Source of the DNA: Octopus sinensis
Taxonomy: Eukaryota
Length of the DNA: 64,000 nucleotides
Assembly (NCBI RefSeq): GCF_006345805.1
Contig: NC_043003.1
Span: 17,360,001 to 17,424,000 of the forward strand
Reading direction: 5' to 3'
The notes under the pieces are model-generated. The model ran no database searches and was not told where the DNA came from. It was given only the letters and a program-made list of their open reading frames with translations. The number at the start of each line of letters is the position of its first letter. The first letter of the stretch is position 1. The position numbers and the translations under genes were made by a program. Below are positions 590 through 61,792 of this stretch, piece by piece.

Positions 590-41874
<41,285 letters not shown>

Positions 41875-42543
41875 GTAGGTGACACATTCAGTATTTGGAA
41901 AGGCAATATAACACATCGAAATATGTTTTTAGATACGACTCTTATTATACTTATATATATTTATGTGAATTAATTATTATATGATAGTGATATTTTTCAG
42001 TGGGATCAAGTTTTATTTTGAATTTTAGAAAAATTCGAAATGGATGTGAAGAAATAAAAAGAAATAAAATAATCATTCAATACATTTGAACCATTAAGCA
42101 TATTTAACTTTCATGACAGTTCCATAAACAGCGTGAAATAATAGCAGTAGGATATAATATCCTATTCAAATATCATAATGCATACTAACTATTTTATTTC
42201 GTATATATTTAGTATGGATGCTTTCATTATGTACTTGGCATGTTCATTGTTTAATAATGAAAAAATAAATTATCATGTCATGTCTCATAATTAGACAATT
42301 AAATTTGGCCTCAGGTAGTGAAGGTCTCTGAGCTAAAAATCTCAAATTATTTTCTTAAAAAAATTTACATTATTATAAATGATTAATAATTGTAAATTAG
42401 GATCAAGAACTCTAGGGTAGCAGTTGGGTCTAAAAAGAAATGTCCATGACATTTTAATTCCCATTTGAAGTCACCCTACTTCAGCTTTGTTATTAATACC
42501 TTGGAAAATAAATTAATGTATTACTCCCTATCCCTAGTGTTAA

Positions 42544-42763
42544 CCCTTTCATTACCAACCCAGCTGAAACGGGCTCTGGCTTTGAGTACAAATGTCTTGT
42601 TTTCATAAGTTTTGAATTAAAATCTTCCACCAAGCCTTAGTCACAAATTATGTTCCTAAGACTAGCTGAATGATAACTAAGTCATTTTACTAAATTGTTT
42701 GTTATATTTAAAGTAATTGAAAGAAACACAGAGCATCTCAAAATAAATACAGTAACGAAGGGG
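42544..42763. mobile_element. piggyBac-like MITE with TTAA TSD
   Basis: TTAA|CCCTTTCATTAC ... GTAACGAAGGGG|TTAA. Confidence 0.85.
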
Positions 42764-43351
42764 TTAAACTTCATAAACCACATGCCTATATACAAATAAT
42801 TATGTTTTTATATTTGTTAATACAAGCTATGCTGATGATCTAAATACTATTTCTTTTGAAATGTTGGGTGAATATAAGTGTAGCTGTATAAATAAAGTTA
42901 GAGAATGAAAGAAGGTTCACATAGATAACTGCAATGCAAACTGAGAGCATAAATGTTTAAATCAAAAGCTGAAAAAGTTGGCAGTTCATGTTATGTCAAT
43001 AATAGTGTTCTGTGTACATGTAGCTAAAATATAACTCTCAATAGCTGAGTCCATCTGCCTTATAGTGTACTGCATAATCAGCAGCTACACTATAAAATTA
43101 ACAATCATTTGTCAAGGTCAGTTTGTTCCCTACTTAGCACTGATCAGAGAGAGTGATAATCATGCTATTTATACTACTACTACAAAAAAAAGTGTCAAAT
43201 TACTAAAATTGTAATTCTATGTTATAAGTAGCAGGTATAGTTGTGTATGTTTGTTTTGACTAATATACATATATTGATGAAAACAGCCTTCCACATTAGG
43301 TGAGGTTTATGATATTTGATGATACTATAATATCTCTGTATATACTACTGT

Positions 43352-43687
43352 GAAGGCGCATGGCTCAGTGGTTAGAGCATCGAGCTTATGATCGTGAAGT
43401 TGTGAGTTTGAATCCCAGACTGGGCTGTGTGTTGTGTTCTTGAGCAAGACACTTTATTTCATGTTGCTCCAGTTCACTCAGCTGTAGAAATGAGTTGCAG
43501 TGTCACAGGTGCCAAGCTCTATCGGTCTTTGGCCTTTCCCTTGGATAACATTGGTGGCATGGAGTGGAGAAGGTGGTATGTATGGGTGACTTTTGGTCTT
43601 CCATAAACAACTTTGCCCGGGCTTGTGCCTGGGAGGGTAACTTTCTAGGTGCAATCCCATGGTCAGTCATGACAAAAGGGGGTCTCA
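43352..43687 (+). mobile_element. tRNA-derived SINE family E, full length
   Basis: gaaggcgcatggctcagtggttagagc A-box, gagtttgaatccc B-box. Confidence 0.8.
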
Positions 43688-44999
43688 ATATACTACTAAG
43701 GAGTCTAATTTGGTTAACCAGGCCAATACCTAAGCTCTTATAGATCAACATTCTACCAAAGAATAAATTTATTTTTTATCTATTTAATGTCTCAGGAACT
43801 AAAACTGGACAACAGTGTAATCAATCACAGAGATCTATGAAAATACAACTCTGATACAGATATATATATTAAAAAAAACTGACTAAATTAAAATAACACA
43901 CTAATAAATTGAGCCTGGATAGACTTAGCAGAAGAGTTTTATTAAAGCAATTCCGTTTTATATTAATTTGTTTCAACATATTATATAAATATCTAACCAT
44001 TGATGAGGGTATATAATGAAAAATAAATATTTGGTTAATATAGGAACTAATGAGGAACTATTCAAAATTTTAATGAGAAATTCACTACCTGAAAGCCAAA
44101 ATACTTCATAAAAACATTTTCATTGTCATCCACATGCAACTAATGTTATTAGCTTGTTTCATTCACTCAAAAATGTTCATCAGTTATTCAGTGTGTTGCA
44201 TGCTGATGACAGACCAAAACATACATAAAATCAATGGAGGACATATGAACATCAGAGTTAACATAATATGATACACAATTTAAGAGTTTGACTTTTCTTT
44301 ATAAATAGGAAATGTAATTTTTATACAATGGACTTGTATTTTATTAACTTTATTTATTTCATTTAGATGAAAATATATGACTGTTTTAAACATTACTGGT
44401 ATGTTTCTGTTTCATATATAAAGTGATTAATGGATTTATATAATGTATTGATGTACAAGCATAAGAGGAGGATATAAAGAGAAGATAGTTGGTAATATAG
44501 AAGTAGTTAATATTTCCTTGTATATATAAAATTGATAGAGAAACTGTTCTAAAATGTATACATTATATATCTAATATGCAATATAGTATATATATATTTC
44601 TTTTAATTTAGAGCCTTCGTTTTATCCATTAAAAGAATTACTTAATTTTATTTCCTAAATTTCTTAGAAGTGACAATTTGTAATCTAAAAAAAATTGCGA
44701 ATTTTTCTTGTTATTATCAGAAACAATGACAAAAATATATGACAGTGAAGGCAATTTCAAACCTCACTGGGTATTCTAAGAAATGAATCTTATTCTGCAG
44801 ATTCTCATATAAAATATATATATTGTAGATTCTAAGATAGATAGCTTATCCAGTATATGGTATTTCTATTTTGTTGTATTTCCCTTTTCCCCCAAAATTT
44901 TATTATTTATAACTGGGGGTTAATCAAGAATCCTAGAAAAACAATAAGATTCCCAAAGATAAACAACTCAGAATTTACTAGGGTTTCATCCATGACTGG

Positions 45000-46100
45000 G
45001 GCCTTTCTGTTTCAATTTCCTCATTAATTGTTGTATGGTTAAGATAGGTGTTGTTAATATTGGATTTTAAATATTATATCTTAGTTGTAGAAAAGCTACA
45101 TCTCTGGGAAAGAATTTGGCTCTTTAATGCAAGTTCTGGACAGCAAGTTAGCTGTTGAAAATATGCATCTTTGAATAAAAAAAAAGAAAATTGGCTCCTT
45201 AGTGCAGGGTGTAGAAAAAACACATTGGGTATGCCAGAAGGGAATGAAGAAAGTTCATCACATGGGTTAAGGTGGAGGTGATATAATGAAAAAATAGAAA
45301 GACCCCTTGCACTTGTAAAAAGAAATGGGGAACAGGAATTTAATTTTATGCGTTAGGTGTTGATGAATAACACATACTTAAAGGTGGTGAAATTTTCTTG
45401 AATGAATTCTAAATGTGTGGCAAATGTATGGGATGCGTTGTCTCATGTGTGTGAGTGTGTGGGAGGCAGAGAAGGAAGCATTGTCATGTTTGAGCAGTAT
45501 TAAATACTAGCAGTTGGTCAGGGATCAAATATTGGTCTAAAGGAAGAAAACGAATTTTTGTGGTAGTCTTTGCAATGTAGAATATCCTTGATAGATTTTT
45601 CAGGATTTATTAAGTCAAAATTGAGTTTGGATATTTGAATCAATAGTGTTAAATGCTTGTTTACGATATATCACAAATGTATTTTAGTGTTTTTAAATGG
45701 TTCTAAGGTGTCAAGTCCCTGCAATTGAATATTTTCATGATTTCTTTTCATGGTGAGTATGCATGCTTGAATAATTGCTGATAACTGAGAAAGTAAGGTG
45801 ATTGATAGTGGAAACATATGATCTTAATGACATATATTTCCACCAGAGTAGTTAAAAGTCTTTGCTGTAGATGTCCAAGTTCAATATACAGGTGAAAAGG
45901 GAAGGGAATAGGATCCACACATATACAAACTTTGCAAACTTAGTGGAAAAGTTCAAGTAGAAATTAGCTTTTGAATAGAAAGTATTTACTGAAATACTCT
46001 TAAAGAATAGGCAAAGATAAGATTTTTTAAAAAAATGTTCTATATATATTCTAAAAGAGATTGTGTTGGGTGATTCTTGATAAAGTAAAGTCATGTGATA
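45000..46100 (-). mobile_element. Highly degenerate retroelement-like remnant
   Basis: Compositional shift; minus-strand fragments such as ILFPSLFTC and HLPHI.NSFKKIS loosely resemble RT/Penelope motifs. Confidence 0.3.
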
Positions 46101-47058
46101 TACTTAAATACACAACACTGTATATATAGTACAATTCTTTTCTATGAATAGAATTGTGGTACTAAATATTCTGAAACGCTTTCAGAATTTTCCACTATTA
46201 GTTTAGGAAAATAATTATTTTGAACTTAATCAGATTATTTATATTCTTTATGGCATTTGACACACCAAAATTGACTTTGAATTTGTAAGTGTTTATCAAA
46301 AACGTTAGATGATGTATTGATAGTGTATTTAACAATAAAATCACCTACATTAATTATGCTGATATGATCTTAAGGTTCTCCTTTGATTGTATTATAGAAA
46401 TTATTCTATATATCTATATATATATAAATATTGTTAAAAAATAAAAATGTATTAAAGAATTTAAAATTTTAATAATGAGGCAGAGAATTAAATTTTCCAA
46501 TATTTTTCTATGCATATTCTTTTAAATAATTTGAAACAAATTAGCTTAGAATTTACATGTTACAATAAGGAATATTTAGCATAATTGACAAAATAACAGA
46601 TGAGCAGCCTTATGAATTTAATAAACTCTTTGTTTTAGAAAACAGAAGGAAAAGTAAAATGACAACCAATAAAAATTTTAGGAAGCTCATACAAGTAAAT
46701 ATAGGAAAATAAATAAAATTATTTGCAGTTAGTTAATAATATACTCGATAAAAGTACATTAATTTTTTTTTTTCAAAGATGAATGTATTAACAGTCATAG
46801 TCTTCATTTGTAGTCTGTAAATAATGCAAACCTTACTCCTAAATTTTTTCAAGGAAGAAATGGGCTTAAATCATGTAACTATTTTGTTACAGTTGACATA
46901 TAGAGTGACCACTACAACTATAATTAATTATTCAATTATTGGTTTCCCATTATATCTTATTTAGTTATCATACATTTCAAAACTATCTACTAATCTAATA
47001 ATTTTTACATATTAGAATTATGAACTTATTATGATGACCAATTTATTATAAATCTGAG

Positions 47059-47093
<35 letters not shown>

Positions 47094-47169
47094 AGTATGT
47101 ATGTATCGTTTGGCAAAAACTTGAAGCCCTAGTCCATTGAATATTCACAATATATATATTTACATATAC

Positions 47170-47200
<31 letters not shown>

Positions 47201-48559
47201 TATATACTTACATATAATATTCACTGTTTTATTCAAATCTTAGTGGGTTAACTAAACATGTAAATAATTATCCATAAAATAATTCTAATTTCAAATGATT
47301 AAATAATATTGAGAGATATCCTTCATGGCTCACTCTTTAAAGATTACTTTATTAAATTAGTGAATTAGAGTAGATATATTTCCTGCAGGCAAGTTCTTGA
47401 TGTAGGTTTGAGTGATATATGTTAATCTTATTTCACTTATATCCCTGTTACTCTCGAGGAAAGACATAACATAATTTCATTTATCTTCTGCTGTAAATCT
47501 TTCTACGAATAAGGCACATTTTCCATATCAGCTGAGCTTAGAGGATGTCAGAAATCGATGTACGTTTTTATATTTGGATTTACCCTTTAACAGTTACATA
47601 AATATGAATAATAGTATACTATGAAGTGGAACTGAATTAAACTAATCACTAAATTTAAAGTTTATAGAACATCCTTTTACAAGAGTTTAAGGATGTTTTA
47701 ATTGTCATTTTAAATTTATGGAAAAATTATCTAAAAGTTGGATTTAATAATTTTGGAAAAAGAATCACAAAAAGTCAATGACATGAAAATAGAAAATTAC
47801 TATTTTTAAATCTCACAAAAAGAGATATTTAGCTACAGTATTTTGGAGTAAAGATTGTTTGTCGACATAACATGGCAGTCTTGGTTTAGGACATGAAAAT
47901 ACTTGCAATCTCTTTTATTAGACAGTCGTTTCCAGTGAACAATAAACAGCAAAATAAATCTTGATAAGAAAAAATAAAGCAATAGATACTCTTTCAGAAT
48001 ATTATTAAAACACAGGAAAGAAACTGGCAGCAAAAGAAAGAATTCAAGCTAAATGTAATATTAATGAAAGAAAAACTAATACACACCACATAGTACAACT
48101 GGTATTTATGCAGTCTACAATGTAATTTTAGCAAAAAGGCAAAGTTTATAAAACCATCTGAAAGAACCAAAGTAGTTGGATTGTCTTTTCCTTTTTCTTC
48201 ATCTCTTTTTCTTCTTACTGTTATAATTTCATCATCACCAATGTATTAATATCAAATTATTTAAGAAGGCATAAATTGAGTCTACAGAATCTACAAAATA
48301 ACACAGCATATCTAAGTCTTTTTCTGTTTCCTTCTGATCTCATTACTGTACAATTTCAGATGTACCTAAATAACGAAACTTGTCTACAACCTTCAACAAT
48401 GTGTATGGCTTTTTATGATCCCGTATATTGGATTCAACTCTTGCCATGCTTGAAATTCCATTTCTTCTGTGCACACATAAATAAAGTAGTCAAATAAAGT
48501 AGTCAAATGAACTAATTAACTGGGAATCATATTTATATATTCATGTTAATGAAGCAATT

Positions 48560-48860
48560 TTTAGGTACCCCTGAGAAAGGCCTATTGCCACTTATCTCTG
48601 CCAATGACATCTCATATATAAAATACAATAATTTGAGATCTGAACTCACCATATTTTCCCATAGCTTCTTTGTCATCTTTTTACAAGCATTTTCCACTGT
48701 CGTAACATGACATTATCTCCTTCTGCGTTTATCAATTATTGCCATCACGTATCTATACCATTGCTGTCATCTCTCTTGCATATATCAGCCATCGCTCTCT
48801 CAGCCCATTTGCATCTGGCTTATCTTGTTCATGCAAGTAAAATCAGCTTATTCAGTTGAT
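48560..48860 (-). mobile_element. Degenerate RTE ORF2 3' fragment
   Basis: Minus strand QER*QQWYRYVMAI...LWENMVSSDL...GRDKW. Confidence 0.55.
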
Positions 48861-49689
48861 CGTTGAAGAGCTTTGAAGGAAATAAAATTACTACGTTTCA
48901 TTTCTGAAACATAAAACAGTAACACTTTTGAGAAATGAAGGAATGAAGTAGGTATAGCTGTGTGGTTAAGAAGTTTGCTTTGGAATCACATAATTTCAGG
49001 TTCAATCTCACGATGCAAATTCTAGGTCAAGTGTCTTCTACTATAACCCTGGGCTAACCAATGCTTTGTGACTGAATTTGGATTAATTTGTTGAAGGTGT
49101 TCAAACTATTTTAATAGGATTCAATCAAAGAAGCAAGAAAATATTCATCAGTTCTCAGTCATTTTCCACTCAAAATATAAAATTTTCATTCAGTTTCCAG
49201 CCTATTGACATAAACACACTTCACGTTATGTTTTTTATAACTGAATTAAATTCAGCTGATGCAAGTTCTTGTGCTTACTTTAGTTTTAAGACACCTGGGC
49301 AGACCATTATGCAGTCATTCAGTCTCTCATTTCAACCCATGCTTCCTCACCATTTTTCTGCTTTTATCACCATATTTCTTTCTGTGATTCCGTCTTTCTG
49401 TCTTTGATCTTTCTGGCTTATTACCAGATAAATTTAGTGCCTTTTGCAAAATTACATCACCAATGATGAGAAAATTACAATTCAAAAGCTGAAAGTTCAA
49501 TACCTTGTTTAGTATAAAAACTTAAATGTGATTAAGCTTAACTTTTCCAAACACTTTATCAAAGTAACTTTTTTAAAAATATTTACTGAGAAAAAAAGAG
49601 GTGGTGTCCATGATCTTTGAGGCTCTCCCAGATTGGTTATAAGATTACAGCTGATTTTTAGCTTGAATTAATATCTGTAAAAAAATGTA

Positions 49690-51450
49690 GTTAAGAAGAG
49701 AATTCCAGCTGAAACCAGTAGGGGGTGAGGAAGGATTGCACTGCGAGAAACTCTTAGGTGAAACACAGTAGAAATTATAAATAAGAACATGCGGTTATCT
49801 CAGATGGGCTTGATTAGGGATAGCATACAGTTTCCTAGTTCAGTGGATCAGTAACCATTTTGGTAATGATCACAGAGGCAGAGAGAGGGATGTAAGTTGT
49901 CAATCACCTGAATGATATTTTTGTAGTGGAGCCATGCCATCTAATATGTTTGTGTAGGAAGAGCAACATCCCAAATATGTAAGCAATACTATATAATTCC
50001 CACTTCAGTTATAGATCTTAATTTAGATTAATTCTGAAGCTTGAGCAAGGGTCTAGTGTTTTTGTCAATATGTGAGATTGCCATATGATCCTTAGCAAAG
50101 ATTCTGAAGCTTAGCAATTGCAGTGGCTTTGACAGCTTTAGTTCTGTGTTGAAAGGGGGAAGTACAAGTGCAACACTGTTTCTTTACTATGTTAGTAATT
50201 GTATCTTGATACTGTTGAAGTTTACTAGGTTATTTTGTCCCAACTGGAGGATGTTTTTAGGGCCAAAATTATTTTAAGGAGTAAGTATGAAGACATCTTG
50301 CTAGGGTGAGTGAAGTTGAGCACTTTATGATGCATGAGAGGAATTAGGAAATGAAAATGTGAGAACATTTTTTTGTGTGTTTCTGTGTGCAAGAGGGAAT
50401 TCAGAACAAAATGAGGAAGGTTGCTTCTTACAGGCTTTCCCAGCAACTACTCATCATCAGAAATGTAAATAACTAGTCTGCTGTTTGTATGGCTTGGCGG
50501 ATAGGAGAGTTTGGAAACATTATCAGGAATAGGAGGTTTGGAAACATTATCAGGAATAGGAGGGTTTGGAAAATTTATCAGGGATTCCTTTGACAATCAC
50601 CACAGGGTTGCAATTTAGGGGGCAAGAGAGCTTGCATGCTGTGCAAAGCATAGATGCATATTTTCCTTTTCTTTGGGAATGTGAGTGTTAAATGTCTCAG
50701 TCGGGGTATATTTACGAGTATAGTATCAATCACCTGATTAGCAGTCCCAGAAGAATTAGGGGAGAGCACATTTTTTTAGTTATGGATAGACAGCATAGAA
50801 TTTGAGGAGTTCTATTCAGTTAGAAGGAGAGATGAACTTAGAGGAATAGGTAAAAGTGACTTTTAGCCAAAATAAATGAATTTAGGTTTCGTGAGTGGGA
50901 TGAGTGTTACAGAGAATAGATTCTACACAAGCAAAGAACCCACTTTTTTGAAAAATGCTTGAAATAGATAAAGCAAACTTGGCAGCATAAATGGATTAGA
51001 GGCAGAGGATGAGACTATATTTCAAACAAGAATTGTAATTTACATATAGGAGTTAGAAAGTTATGAGGGATTAAACTGTGGTCCATGATATAATCTATTG
51101 TTATTTTTAAACTTTAAAATAATTCTAAGTTTAAATGATTGTTTGATAGAGAAGATGAAGATGGTAACTAGTTTCAGGAATTATCACTAAAAATCCAGAC
51201 GCAGTTAAATAGGCTGTGTGAGTGCCTCAAAATGTTGTTGAAAGTCACAAAGTGAGATAACAAGATACAGGGTTAATACCAGATAGTAGGGCATTACTGA
51301 ATTATTACGAGGATTTTGGGCCCTTGTACTTCCTGAACTCCAACAGTAGGACTTGAGAACTTTTTCTAACAATCAGTGGCATTACCCTGTAGGAAATGTA
51401 ACTGGAAGCCATGATGAGTTATTATCCTTAAATACATACAAGAACAAACT
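49690..51450 (-). mobile_element. Degenerate L2/CR1-like LINE remnant, includes a 3x ~22-bp tandem repeat at 50505-50583
   Basis: G-rich plus strand in AT-rich background; no intact motif. Confidence 0.3.
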
Positions 51451-52543
51451 TCAGTTAAGGCATTTAGGAGCCAAGTATCAGTGTCAAATTAAATAGTATG
51501 TTAGGCGCTATCCATGAAAAAAAAAACACAATTTATCTTGAATAAATAAATCTTATATATACATAAGCTTGTTGGAAATCTAATTAACTACACAAAGTAA
51601 TTATAGTGTCTAATTCAAGTGACATAGATCAATTATTTTTAGTTTTTTTTTATTAGTGAGCTCAATCATATTGTCAATGCATTAAGATCACAGCTAAATG
51701 AATGCTAAATAAACATTTTATTGAAAATAAAAGGAAAATAGAAAAATATAGAATTAGACTAAATAAATCAGACATTTATAACATTAAAAGTCTCCATATA
51801 TTTTAGTTTATATATAATTAGTGCTTAATATCAGTTTTTAAGTTTGTGAGAAGAATTAAAAACTAATTGTTTTTAAGATGGTTTAAAATGTTGGTTTTGC
51901 AAAGATAGATGAAATGGTTTTGCTATAGAAACATATTTTACTGTTTGGAATCCCACTGATTTATGAATAGCAGTTGAATACCTAAGCAACTGAGAATTAT
52001 ATTCTCTGCAAAAGGAAAACAAAATTACAGTCTACTCAACACTAATTTGCTTATAAACAGTAGACTTGAAACCCATTGTAGAGTGCAACCCTTGCATTAT
52101 CAGCTTCAATACTACATACAAGTTGTAGTGCACCTGAGCTCTGCAGACAATAAGCTCATTATTATTTTTTTTTTCAACTGTACATAAAAGTTACATTCTC
52201 AAATGAAATAACATTTCTTAATGTTATGATAGAGCCTATGTTATGTCTGAGATATTAAAACTTGGGGAACTCTGAAAAATATTGAAATATAAATATTTAC
52301 AACTTTCATGATCAGTTGAAGCATTTGACAGTATCTAATCATTTGTATTAATTCCCTTCCTTTTTAAACAGAAGTATATTTTAAAACATTAGTTAATGGA
52401 CTAATATATGGTTATGGGGAAGTACCTCAGGGAAAATTTTGTATACAAAGTATAAATGTAATAAGGATTAACATAGATAATATAGTGAGATGAAAACTTT
52501 GATTAACTGAGAATATTCCTGCAGTCAATATACAAAAAAGTTG

Positions 52544-52760
52544 AAGATGGCAAGCTGGCAGAAACGTTAGCATGCCAGGTGAAATGCTTAGTGGTATTTT
52601 GTCTGTCTTTACGTTCTGGGTTCAAATTCCACCGAGGTCAACTTTGTCTTTCATCCTTTTGGGTTCGATAAATTAAGTACCAGTTGCATACTGGTGTTGA
52701 GCTAATGGACTGGTCCCCTCCCCCAAAATTTTGGGCCTTGTGCCTAGAGTAGAAAAGAAT
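52544..52760 (+). mobile_element. SINE-like family A variant
   Basis: Matches 41-250. Confidence 0.75.
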
Positions 52761-54079
52761 ATGCAAAAACTTCCCCTAGTAGTGTTTAAAAAATCTAAAA
52801 ATCAACAAACAAGGGAGTTAACTTCAATAAAACCAACTAACTAATATTTAAAAAAATATAGACAATGCAGGTGTGAATGCATTTTGTTTTTTATAAACCT
52901 AAAAGGTGAAAGAAAAGAAGCCTATTAAGTCTCAGTGAAGCAGATACATCTAATTACCCACCCCACTTCTGTATGTGTGTGTTTGTGTGATAAGTAGTAA
53001 TGCATAAATTTTATAATTTTATAAAGTTCATAATTTAATTATGAGCTTTGTGTGAAATTTATGCTTTTCACTTTAAATTCTAAATATGCTGGTCTCAGCA
53101 ATTATTCAGTCCAATTTTGTATATACATGCAAATTTGTTCAACCAAGGAATTACTGCATTGTAATAATATATAGCGATTTTAATGCTGGATTGTGAGTTG
53201 AGCACTAAATTACCATGGATATATTTTTTGATATTTATACATCAATTATATATATATATAGATATTGTGATGAGTGTTAGTTTTGTCAACAGCATAGAAT
53301 ATGGAGATCTAATAAAACTGAAACATGTCCATTGTTTTCACCAGTTGACTTTAAAGATATGATCCACTTCCATAGTCATCTTCTATATTTTCTACAAATT
53401 TCACTTATTTAATTTTGTTGGAGTTATTTCTCTTGTTTGTTGTTTTTAGACTTAAAACACTCATAGAGGGAGATTTTGTCTACTGACTGCATTAATTAAT
53501 CTCAAGTGACTGAAATTTTTCATCCTACTATATTTCTATAACTGATATATTCGTTTAGTAAGATAGTTTTTTCTATATATTTTTATACGTTGATTAATGA
53601 AATTATTTGCAGACAAGGAGACTAGTTTAATTAATTTTTAGGTTTAAGATATTGTAACATTACTTAAGATTAAATGAAAAATCTAGAATTTCATTGGTCA
53701 ACTATAATTGAATAGTAACTTTATTTAGGATATTTGTCTGTCAGCCTTCTGTAACTGAGCTCTGTATGAACCACTATAGCATGCAATGTAAAAAAATTAT
53801 CTTCTAAAGTAGAAACAAATATAGATATATTCAGATATTCTCATAAATAGAATAAAAATTACAGCCTTATAATTTTAAATGAACAGGAGTTAAATTTTAT
53901 TTTTAGTATATATCAAAATAATGTTATCAAAAGAGTTCATATTGACATTATTTTTATGAAAGGGGGAATAAGGTTTAAGTGTATGGGACATATTGTATTT
54001 GATTTTGAGGACCCAGCAACAATGTATAGGCCAGAACATTGATACTGGCATGCTATTGTTCGTTTTTCACTTTTTCCAG

Positions 54080-54118
54080 GTTTTCGAGGAGGAAGTCCAA
54101 AATACTGACCGAGGGAAG
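54080..54118 (+). CDS. Candidate alternative twitchin micro-exon (13 aa, VFEEEVQNTDRGK)
   Basis: cgtttttcactttttccag| purine-rich 39 nt AAG|gtatag; phase 0/0 matches the exon-36 donor; no stop. Confidence 0.55.
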
Positions 54119-56049
54119 GTATAGACTTCATGCTAAGTTTTTACCCCTACTGCCTCTTCTGATCATTTCCTTAAAAACTGTGTTCAGAAGTTTTACAAAC
54201 CATTGGTTTTTGATATACTGTTTTTGCTGATCTTAATTGTATATCTTTAAAAAAAAAATTCTATACTTGAAAATGTCTACACACTAAAACCCTGATCTAA
54301 TTTTCTCAAGGAGCATCTTTCTCAGTGTTTTATGTATATCCCTAATGCTAATGAGCTGCTAGAGAAATACAGGATATACGTAATAATCTACTGAACTATT
54401 TCTATTTTACTTAATATTCATTTGATTCTTTTTGCAGTTTTGCAGTATTGAATCAAAATGTGACGAGAAATTAATTGTACTAACAGTATTAATTCTTTTC
54501 TAATTTAGATTGTGAATTGATAAAGGGCAAGATAAACAAAACAAATATGTGGAACGATATATATTTATTATATGATATCGTTCTTTAAATAATATAACTA
54601 GGAACACTTACATAGGTATTAAACAAATAGTTTATATCTATAATTTTAAAATATAACGAAAATCTATGGAAACTGAAATAATAGTCATATCACTTAAATG
54701 TTTCTGTCAAAAATAAATACGAAATTTATTAAATGAAAAAGCCGAAATTCTTCCAACAAACGATATAAAACAATATGTTTTATGACTTATTAGTTATATA
54801 CACTGCTTCTCTTAACTTAACAAACTTTTATCATTACTAATTAGAATAAAATAGCAAAGTATTTTTGGATTACATATACATGTACATGCTTCTGTTATAG
54901 TAAGTTTATATATAATGCATTCTTACATGATCATCACTTTGTATACATCAATCCATGCTAGCATGGTTTTGGATGGATCACACAGTATTTTTCCCCTTGG
55001 TGCATTCTCTCATCATCTAGTTACATGCTGCAACAGAGAAAACGGGGTCATCTCTGAAGTCATGAATGCAGTTATTTTTGGAATGTTTTTGATGGCTGGA
55101 TGTCCTTCATATCATCAATCACTTTACGGTGTGGACTAGGTGCATTATATCTTGCCACCAGAATTAGTGAGGTTGTCTGAAGTGAATCAAAAGAATCCTC
55201 TCTAGATTGTTCATTCCTTTCATTTTTTTTTTGTTTTTGTTTATTTGATACAATTTTTTTTAGCTGGATTCACATCCTCTCAGCTTCACACTTCACAGTG
55301 TGGCTGGTGTATCATATCACACAGCCAGTAGGAGACATGTTGTCTGTGGTGGAATTTAAAGAGTATGCTATGCACTTCCATCATTTGCTCCTTTTTATTT
55401 TGGCAGAATTTCTTACAGATATATGCCCTTTCTATCACCAACCACCTGACGGTGAAGACTGGGAGAATTTTATCACGCTACTGGCATTAGAGCCAGTATC
55501 TGTGCCAGGATCCCCACTTGACTTTTAGTTATTCAAAGTTACTACTAGGTGGGTGTGTTTGGAGTACCTAACCTTGTAGGGAGGACATGTTCACAACAGC
55601 CATGTATTTCTTTAAGCAGTGAGAGATGTAACCATCAAGGGACTGATCGTGGCAGTTGACCTCTGGGGTAAATACTGCTTTTGTTATGTATGTAGGTAGT
55701 AAATAACATACAAAGACTATCTGAGAATAAAACTGATTCTGGGAATTGAAAGCAGATATACAGAAAAGAAAGCAAAGAGTCATGATTTTATAAGTTAGGA
55801 CCAAAACTGTGTCATTGATCAAGATGACCATGAAAGTGCTGCAGCATGGCAACAGCCACTTGGCTGAAATGAATAAAAGAATAACTTTTAAATCAAAAAA
55901 TATATAAGTAAAAATAAAAGAATTATTTGGAAAATATAATACTGAGCTAGTTTTCTCTTACGTGTTAACATATGAAAGCAATATTTAATTAACATCTATG
56001 ATTCATTTATTATAATATGATATAACATATTTTAGTCGTGAGTACTGAT

Positions 56050-56280: not shown

Positions 56281-56744
56281 CTATACATATGCACTTTAAA
56301 TGTGTCTATGCGTAAGATCAGAAGCCTGTGATGTGTTCATTCATTCAAACGAAACAAAGAAGAAATAAGTAAACTTCAAGTCCCCAACTATAAAATTGGT
56401 GGCAGCAGGCCATGGGCATTGAGCTAATGGTGCTGGTGTTCACATACTATCAGGATAAGTTAAGACATGATACAGAGCCAAAATCTGAAATGATGATTTC
56501 TAATTTTGACACCTTACACCAATAAAATGTGGAGAGTCATTTAACCATTTTGGAAGCCTCCTGCATTCTCAAACAAGCTGAGGTGTCTTGAATTCATCTT
56601 GTGACACTGGATATAGTATGTAGGAATGAGAAGGTAGATTGATGTGTGCACACATTATTTTCACCAGAAAAAATACGTATGATAATCTCAAATCTACTTA
56701 GACCATCATCATAGTTGATGGGCAAACTATCAATGACAAGTGGG

Positions 56745-56787
56745 TGTGTATGTATATGTATATATATATATCAATGTATGTATGTAT

Positions 56788-56834
<47 letters not shown>

Positions 56835-56931
56835 ATATTTATATATATCTGCATATATATATACATATATAAAAGCATTCATTTTCATCATTCAACATTT
56901 ACATACATACATATATACATACATATATATA

Positions 56932-56967
<36 letters not shown>

Positions 56968-57095
56968 CACATGCACACATATATATATATATATACATAC
57001 ATATACATATATATATATACACACACACATATATATATATATACACACACATATATATATATGTGTGTGTATATGCATATATATGTGTATAATGT
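56745..57095. repeat. (TA)n/(CA)n/(TG)n compound microsatellite
   Basis: Directly visible. Confidence 0.9.
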
Positions 57096-57924
57096 GTTTG
57101 GTATATGTTTATACAGCTCCTGAAGTTGTTTGGACGGTCTGTAATTTTTTAATTTTAAACTTTCTAGGCAGATAAAATAGCTAAACATTTATATTTAAAT
57201 ATATTTAAATGGTAACCCAAAATAACTCTATACATAGCCCTTTACCTGGAGTGTGGGTTGGTCTGAGCATGTTTCATAGCTGTTTGCAACTGATATGTAT
57301 AATACATTAATGGAAAGTACTCCTTTAACTGGTACTGATTTTGCCTTACTTCATATATTTTTATATATAAAAGACAAATCAGGGAAACTTTGGTAAGCTG
57401 ATTCTCTGAGCGAACCTTTTTCATATATTGCCTTTTATAGCATGAGAAATTCTTTATCCTAATCTTCTACATGATATGGTTAGATATACTAGGAACAGAA
57501 AGGCAGACAAAACTATATTAGATTGTAGCTCGTCAATGTTAACTCAAATAATGTCCTTGATAGGTATTTTCTGAAACTTCATTTCATGTTAAAATATTAT
57601 TTAAATTTCTTCCTAATAGTTAATACAGCTAACACACTTGTTTTTTTCTTTTGATTTATATTGGGGTAAAAGCAGAAAAATAATGACTGAATAATTAACT
57701 GAAATTAGTTAAATGTGATATTAATTAATTTTACAAACTATATATTAAAATTAATTGACATCGGGAAAACCAAAAGTGTACATTTTGCATATTTAATGAA
57801 ATAGCTTTAATAACAAAGAGTAAGAACTGTGTTTTAAGCCTAGAATTATTTATCTTTATGTAACTTATTTGGCTTATTCATAAATTAAGCATTATTTAAT
57901 AAATTTTTCTAAAGGCATTAAGCT

Positions 57925-58130
57925 GAATTGAAAGAGTGTCAGAAAAATTGCTTTACAATATTTCCTCTGACTCTTTACATTTTGAATTCAAATCTTGCTA
58001 AATTCAACTTTGCCTTTCATCCTTTCAGGGTCAAAAAAATAAAGTAGGAGTCAAGCACTGGGGTTGATTGATTTTACTAAATTCCTCCCCTTAAAATTGC
58101 TGGCCTTATGTTTAAATTAAAAACAGTTAT
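57925..58130 (+). mobile_element. SINE-like family A, degenerate
   Basis: caactttgcctttcatcctttcagggtc. Confidence 0.55.
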
Positions 58131-61160: not shown

Positions 61161-61355
61161 ATGATGATCAGTGATCAAAGTGATGAATATATCCTTAACA
61201 ACCACAGCAACTACAATTCTACAGAAAATCTTTGGCTCGACCGACATTCCACATGGGTACATTCCAATTGGAAACATTCCACAAGGATACATTCCACAGG
61301 AATACATTCCACTGGGATACATTCCACGGGGATTTACACCAGGTTTTCGGGACTT
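61161..61355 (+). CDS. Candidate alternative twitchin exon (65 aa, HSTGI pentapeptide repeats)
   Basis: gtgtttttcaaag| 195 nt CTT|gtaagt; phase 0/0; only frame 0 is open from this acceptor; repeat variation is mostly synonymous in this frame. Confidence 0.55.
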
Positions 61356-61792
61356 GTAAGTAATAATTACTTTAAAAAAATCAGATCGAAGTTAATGGAT
61401 TTAAGTAGCTCTGTATCCAATTCCTATTTGGGTTAAGGTTTTATGTTCAAAGCTGAACTTATCTGTCCAGAAACTCTTAACATAATATTTCATAAAAGTT
61501 ATATTTGTTAATGATTTCATTGTGATGACAATGTTATTTAAGATGGGAATTTTCTCAGGTACATGTTGAAAAGTTATGTAAATGTGGTTGTGTGTATGTA
61601 TGTCTCTGAGGTATGCATATGTCTTTGTATGTATGTGAGCAAGTGTTAAGATTTTTTATTATATTTAAAGATTTAAGCAGTTTCACAGTTTACACTGATT
61701 TTCAAGTTGAGACAGAAAGATGTGGTTTATGCTGCAACATATATATATATATCAGTTATATATATATATCAGTGTATGTGTGTGTGTGTGAA

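Follow-up and report, generated by a model that had tools for sequence, protein, structure and literature searches.

A probable cassette micro-exon ahead of the autoinhibitory kinase tail in octopus twitchin

A 39-nt segment lying deep inside a long intron of the octopus twitchin gene is very probably a genuine cassette micro-exon, placed after the kinase core and ahead of the autoinhibitory tail, where it would encode a flexible acidic loop. The segment was picked out in a 64,000-nt stretch of Octopus sinensis DNA (hereafter the window; coordinates are positions within it), and a reading made from the letters alone had proposed it as an alternative micro-exon following the kinase domain. Such an exon is indeed annotated in a second species: among the RefSeq twitchin isoforms of O. 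bimaculoides, X1 and X3-X8 include it and X2 skips it. It is this annotation evidence, not the sequence alone, that establishes the exon, because the statistics that can be computed from the sequence are model-dependent. The micro-exon is already known at annotation level in the sister species, and the present analysis is a confirmation rather than a discovery.

The window covers part of the twitchin gene, and its exon-encoded sequence matches O. sinensis twitchin, whose gene range is 257 kb. On the + strand a long series of Fn3/Ig exons is followed by five protein kinase exons. The Fn3/Ig-type open frames of the upstream array run from 590 to 34067 and map to residues 1922-3878 of O. bimaculoides X1. 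The kinase itself is of the MLCK type and nearest to the twitchin kinases (1KOB, E = 4.2e-151; 1KOA, 8.7e-107); its exons are identical to O. sinensis twitchin, and its best database match is O. bimaculoides twitchin. Over 1,797 exon-encoded residues of the window we counted no real mismatch to O. sinensis XP_036360273.1, setting aside six apparent mismatches that are common to all models and fall at exon edges as drawn here. Compared with O. vulgaris the same residues show a single additional mismatch, and compared with O. bimaculoides 35. In total, 33 twitchin exon junctions in the window were verified against the protein. The features discussed below are collected in Table 1, where, as in the text, a slash marks a splice site.

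Table 1. Features in and around the post-kinase intron of octopus twitchin, with the corresponding oyster segments.
Feature	Position	Strand	Evidence or remarks
Last exon of the kinase catalytic core, ending ...HAWLK, AAG/gtaggt, phase 0	41829..41874	+	Junction checked against O. sinensis twitchin (P0435); alignment with 1KOB extends to WLK
Intron upstream of the micro-exon, 12,205 nt	41875..54079	+	Without a twitchin-coding segment
Putative branch point ttgAt (yUnAy); its A, at 54042, precedes the AG by 37 nt	54039..54043	+	Proposed from reading only
GCATG, Rbfox-type core without leading U	54048..54052	+	28-32 nt upstream of the exon; preceded by G, not T
Polypyrimidine tract and acceptor, tcgtttttcactttttccAG	54060..54079	+	Generic score 11.7 (real exons max 12.7); gene-trained 4.3, 21st percentile of real acceptors
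Probable cassette micro-exon, 39 nt, phase 0/0, peptide VFEEEVQNTDRGK	54080..54118	+	Exact peptide at XP_052825203.1 (X1) residues 3878-3890, in X3-X8, not in X2
Donor AAG/gtatag, weak, within the gene's real range	54119..54124	+	Gene-trained score 4.1, 15th percentile
Alternative terminal exon, MMISDQSDEY...SYLG and TAA stop	61161..61436	+	Joined to the micro-exon in X8; acceptor gtgtttttcaaag/ATGATG
Oyster orthologous phase-0 intron after HAWLK, 108 nt	L001 7882-7989		Logan SRR327443; peptides equal Magallana gigas twitchin
Oyster alphaR1 exon, 78 nt, GDLSSRTTRIPSSRYDKIRARIKERY	L001 7990-8067		Logan SRR327443

Downstream of the kinase exons, searches of 41875-64000 by tblastn, by a profile of twitchin tails and by regular expressions found no regulatory-tail exon, so the post-kinase intron continues past 64000. 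The autoinhibitory tail (alphaR1-alphaR2-betaR1) is present in the matching proteins as GDHSNLTHRIPSSRY...FSSLRKHRPKEY, and its exons lie beyond the window. After the kinase, every twitchin relative carries the pattern GD...RIPSSRY..IR..I..KY, followed by W.....GR.ANFSSLRK. Elsewhere in the window, intronic microsatellite and minisatellite arrays occupy 17900-18450, 18680-19510, 22559-22786 and 56700-57170; they comprise CA/TA-rich runs, a tandem array reading YSEYMGK in one frame and a GAT/GAC run reading poly-D, and they yield long spurious open frames on both strands.

The annotated isoforms of close relatives carry most of the argument. With the window kinase sequence repeated 14 times as a query, so as to recover full-length twitchins, the top protein match was O. 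bimaculoides twitchin isoform X2 (XP_052825204.1, 4,558 residues). Its 90% cluster holds O. bimaculoides X1-X8 together with three O. vulgaris models, one O. sinensis model and two older O. bimaculoides models. The RefSeq isoforms X1 and X3-X7 read ...DHAWLK-VFEEEVQNTDRGK-GDHSNLTHRIPSSRYNKIRQKIKEKY..., that is, the insert and then GDHSNLTHRIPSSRY, while X2 equals X1 minus these 13 residues and differs from it in nothing else. Counting the isoform with an alternative end, the exon is used in seven of the eight O. bimaculoides models (X1, X3-X8). All XP_ records are computed Gnomon models, and the presence of the exon in mRNA is supported at annotation level only. In our reading the isoform set fits one model per splicing event, and it is therefore silent on abundance. 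The exon is missing from the sole O. sinensis model, from the three O. vulgaris models and from the two older O. bimaculoides models; for O. sinensis this absence is uninformative, because only a single isoform is annotated.

Between the window and O. bimaculoides the insert is identical at 13 of 13 residues, with the frame and the AG and GT intact. This identity has a probability of roughly P ~0.08 under an assumed, not measured, neutral divergence, and is weak evidence of constraint because the two species are so close. Wider searches added no further instance: the exon peptide and the WLK-VFEEEV junction, written as degenerate DNA patterns, gave 0 matches in metagenome contigs, an exact look-up of the window's open reading frames in public assemblies had nothing on record, and a cluster-representative protein search retrieved distant twitchins only. 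In the literature we found nothing specific on twitchin or projectin splicing at the kinase-tail junction or on octopus muscle micro-exons.

Two more alternatively spliced segments are annotated in O. bimaculoides X1, at residues 718-742 and 775-835, both outside the window. RRQS and RRAS motifs, of protein kinase A type, occur in the second, which recalls the phosphorylation region that controls catch in the twitchin of bivalves.

Over 54060-54124 the window reads tcgtttttcactttttccag/GTTTTCGAGGAGGAAGTCCAAAATACTGACCGAGGGAAG/gtatag. The body of 13 codons is stop-free in frame 0 and begins 12.2 kb into the post-kinase intron; its length falls within the definition of a micro-exon (<=51 nt; PMC6600660), and its borders are a canonical AG and GT (ccag/.../gtatag). 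What the sequence-only reading had described here, namely a clean pyrimidine tract, a 39-nt body, an AAG/gtatag donor and no stop, is accurate letter for letter. Its phase assignment of 0/0 also holds, since the upstream exon closes with AAG/gtaggt at 41874 on a complete codon. Donors comparable to that of the micro-exon are in real use in the gene, as CAG/gtataa at 4560 and AAG/gtatta at 33894.

Exons regulated by Rbfox have a (U)GCAUG, conserved across species, at a distance of up to about 200 nt. The GCATG reported about 30 nt before the micro-exon is present; no copy occurs downstream on the same strand, and a single nearby copy is not significant because the 22,126-nt interval contains 20. 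Neural micro-exons that depend on SRRM3/4 (eMIC) have a UGC motif close upstream of the acceptor and are included specifically in neural tissue. The window has a TGC at 54051-54053, some 26-28 nt ahead of the AG, in what is a muscle gene.

How far the sequence by itself can identify the exon depends on the model used for scoring. With a generic metazoan splice matrix the segment comes out first when all 725 AG...GT candidates of the 22-kb interval that are compatible in frame are ranked, and only three candidates in 128 kb, both strands included, score as high (~0.4 expected per 22 kb). Codon usage points the same way: on a log-odds scale trained on 1,797 real codons of the twitchin gene against its introns, the micro-exon scores 7.2, the median of real 13-codon exon windows and a value that only 0.33% of stop-free intron windows reach. 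Its other two frames score about zero or below, so that it is exon-like in the right frame only. Under matrices trained on the gene's own 33-34 verified junctions, however, its sites fall at the 15th-21st percentile of real sites, and 25 control candidates in ~125 kb equal or exceed it at both. The sequence statistics are suggestive yet model-dependent, and could not alone settle exon status. An alternative exon would, besides, be expected to have weak splice sites.

These numbers bear on one reading that we regard as highly improbable, namely that in O. sinensis the segment is a chance exon-like pattern or a disused orthologue, the exon being real in O. bimaculoides only. It would account for the segment appearing in no O. 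sinensis or O. vulgaris model, and the expected number of equally well-formed candidates under the generic matrix leaves some room for chance. That a close relative should have an identical 13-residue peptide in the orthologous intron, in frame and bordered by intact AG and GT, is, however, not coincidence, and the absence of the exon from one annotated O. sinensis isoform carries no information.

Several other origins of the segment were considered and set aside. The window holds no second copy and no tandem repeat that would mark a repeat or transposon origin; no Pfam or Rfam match on either strand indicates a separate gene or RNA at this site; and the VFEEEVQNTDRGK peptide has no paralogue inside twitchin, as an exon duplication within the gene would require. 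The second-best candidate under the generic matrix, at 58029-58043 (tttgcctttcatcctttcag/GGTCAAAAAAATAAA/gtagga, GQKNK), occurs in no annotated isoform and is not coding-like in composition. Separately, a repeated transposon-like element that encodes an open frame is found at 4601-4678 (+), 29589-29666 (-) and about 11100-11283 (+). The splice-like sites of these copies outscore those of the micro-exon under the gene-trained matrices; in this genome, elements of this kind give rise to false exon candidates.

The micro-exon has a second annotated partner. In X8 (XP_052825211.1, P0431; 3,981 residues) it is spliced directly into MMISDQSDEYILNN... (MMISDQSDEYILNNHSNYNSTENLW...), which corresponds to 61161-61433 of the window, X8 residues 3891-3981 matching the window at 91/92. 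The X8 protein ends in this exon and, as annotated, is without the regulatory tail and the C-terminal Ig domains. The sequence-only reading had allowed for the micro-exon to be used alone, together with the 61161 exon, or mutually exclusively with it; the first two uses are annotated (X1 and X3-X7 alone, X8 both), and the third is not borne out, since no annotated isoform joins 41874 directly to 61161. The 61161 exon has a low-complexity look, with HSTGI repeats, and contains an internal CTT/gtaagt at 61355/61356 that could also act as a donor. Its identity of 91/92 is slightly above the mean for constitutive exons (35 differences over 1,797 residues), which hints at constraint or at very low divergence.

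To place the insert among relatives, the length of the tether was taken as the distance from WL to a [YFW]SSL[RK] landmark in 214 twitchin, projectin and UNC-22 proteins, among them over 130 annotated isoforms of gastropod, bivalve, Lingula and Drosophila origin. This distance is 41-48 residues in 208 of the proteins, and exactly 42 in 190; a distance of 55 occurs only in six O. bimaculoides isoforms. Across the >130 gastropod, bivalve, Lingula and Drosophila isoforms there is no variation between WL and SSLRK. Drosophila projectin (bent) and the mollusc twitchins are likewise giant muscle kinases with many isoforms, but they vary elsewhere. The twitchin kinases of Aplysia (1KOB) and C. elegans (1KOA/3UTO) have a core closely similar in sequence, and differ from the inserted octopus form in passing from WLK or WLT straight to GD... 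and the tail.

The intron that houses the exon could be followed into other molluscs. In oyster the orthologous intron after HAWLK spans 108 nt, which leaves no room for an exon, whereas in the octopus window it exceeds 22 kb. The boundary after the kinase core also falls at this place in gastropod genomic open frames. Judged from these sequences, the phase-0 intron position is old and common to oyster and gastropods. On present annotation, the micro-exon appears to be an addition confined to one lineage, within an intron that has greatly expanded.

This restricted distribution is also what might be seen if the segment were low-level splicing noise, a cryptic exon of a very long intron that was captured by annotation and has no selected function. 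Such an exon could well be confined to one genus among 214 proteins, interrupt a tether of otherwise almost invariant length, have splice sites that are weak under gene-trained matrices and have no counterpart in the O. sinensis and O. vulgaris models or in the older O. bimaculoides ones; an isoform set with one model per splicing event is consistent with it too. We nevertheless consider noise unlikely: the frame is kept, codon usage is typical of exons in the right frame only, a second species preserves the peptide together with both splice sites, and seven of eight models use the exon, including the one with the alternative end. The O. bimaculoides records, which are computed models from a species other than that of the window and for which we found no paper on this exon, agree with the window in the 13-residue insert and in the junction, and annotate both skipping and 61161-type joining.

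The consequences of a genuine cassette exon for the protein were explored with an AlphaFold model of the X1 segment, built on a 98-sequence alignment (mean pLDDT 90; an earlier model from a 19-sequence alignment reached pLDDT 46 and was set aside). The insert, residues 281-293 of the model, forms a low-confidence loop with a single short helical turn; mean pLDDT is 57 in block 281-290 and 71 in block 291-300. The core, alphaR1, alphaR2 and betaR1 superpose on 1KOB with TM 0.92/0.96 and an rmsd of 1.1 A. The model thus places the insert where it would leave the autoinhibited fold as in PDB 1KOB. With four acidic and two basic residues, the insert has a net charge of -2, and a role as an acidic spacer, read from the sequence, fits both its position and its charge.

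The helix that follows the insert is alphaR1 (RIPSSRYNKIRQKIKEKY), with alphaR2 further downstream. Of these, alphaR1 is an amphipathic helix that binds Ca/S100A1, and calmodulin weakly, while alphaR2 is the active-site blocker and occludes the ATP site; calmodulin reportedly does not activate twitchin kinases (PMC3114093). The suggestion that the insert lies ahead of an autoinhibitory tail helix was right as to position, and its label for that helix, calmodulin-binding and autoinhibitory, does not fully agree with the published roles of alphaR1 and alphaR2 (PMC3114093).

Taken together, our proposal is that the micro-exon sits in the phase-0 intron between ...HAWLK and the first tail exon, GDHSNLTHRIPSSRYNKIRQKIKEKY, which encodes the alphaR1 helix. 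Inclusion would add 13 residues, with their net charge of -2, to the tether between core and tail, and skipping would restore the spacing of all other twitchins. Splicing of the micro-exon to the 61161 terminal exon would give a kinase without the autoinhibitory tail. The presumed flexible acidic loop would lengthen the tether and alter the ease with which the tail is displaced, whether by S100-type activators, by phosphorylation or by mechanical pull, and autoinhibition would not be abolished.

A partial precedent exists. In CaMKII, alternative exons change the length of a flexible linker beside the regulatory segment of a CaMK-group kinase and thereby tune activation. The likeness has its bounds: the CaMKII linker follows the regulatory segment and precedes the hub, whereas the octopus insert precedes the tail and lies between the core and alphaR1. 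Moreover, calmodulin reportedly does not activate twitchin kinase (PMC3114093).

For the annotation of octopus genomes, these observations mean that both the micro-exon, which the O. bimaculoides RefSeq models have, and the 61161 alternative terminal exon are lacking from the twitchin models of O. sinensis and O. vulgaris. Beyond this, we tentatively raise the possibility that the micro-exon is an octopus-lineage innovation that provides two or three regulatory grades of a mechanosensory kinase, depending on tissue or muscle type. If true, the grades would comprise one with the standard tether, one whose tether gains 13 residues and is more acidic, and one that loses the tail through use of the 61161 exon. 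The insert falls at the hinge between catalytic core and autoinhibitory tail in a kinase that mechanical force is believed to open, a hinge whose length is nearly constant in 208 other proteins. A natural pair of isoforms differing by just these 13 residues, for which we found no published description, would be a ready-made experiment on how tether length relates to autoinhibition.
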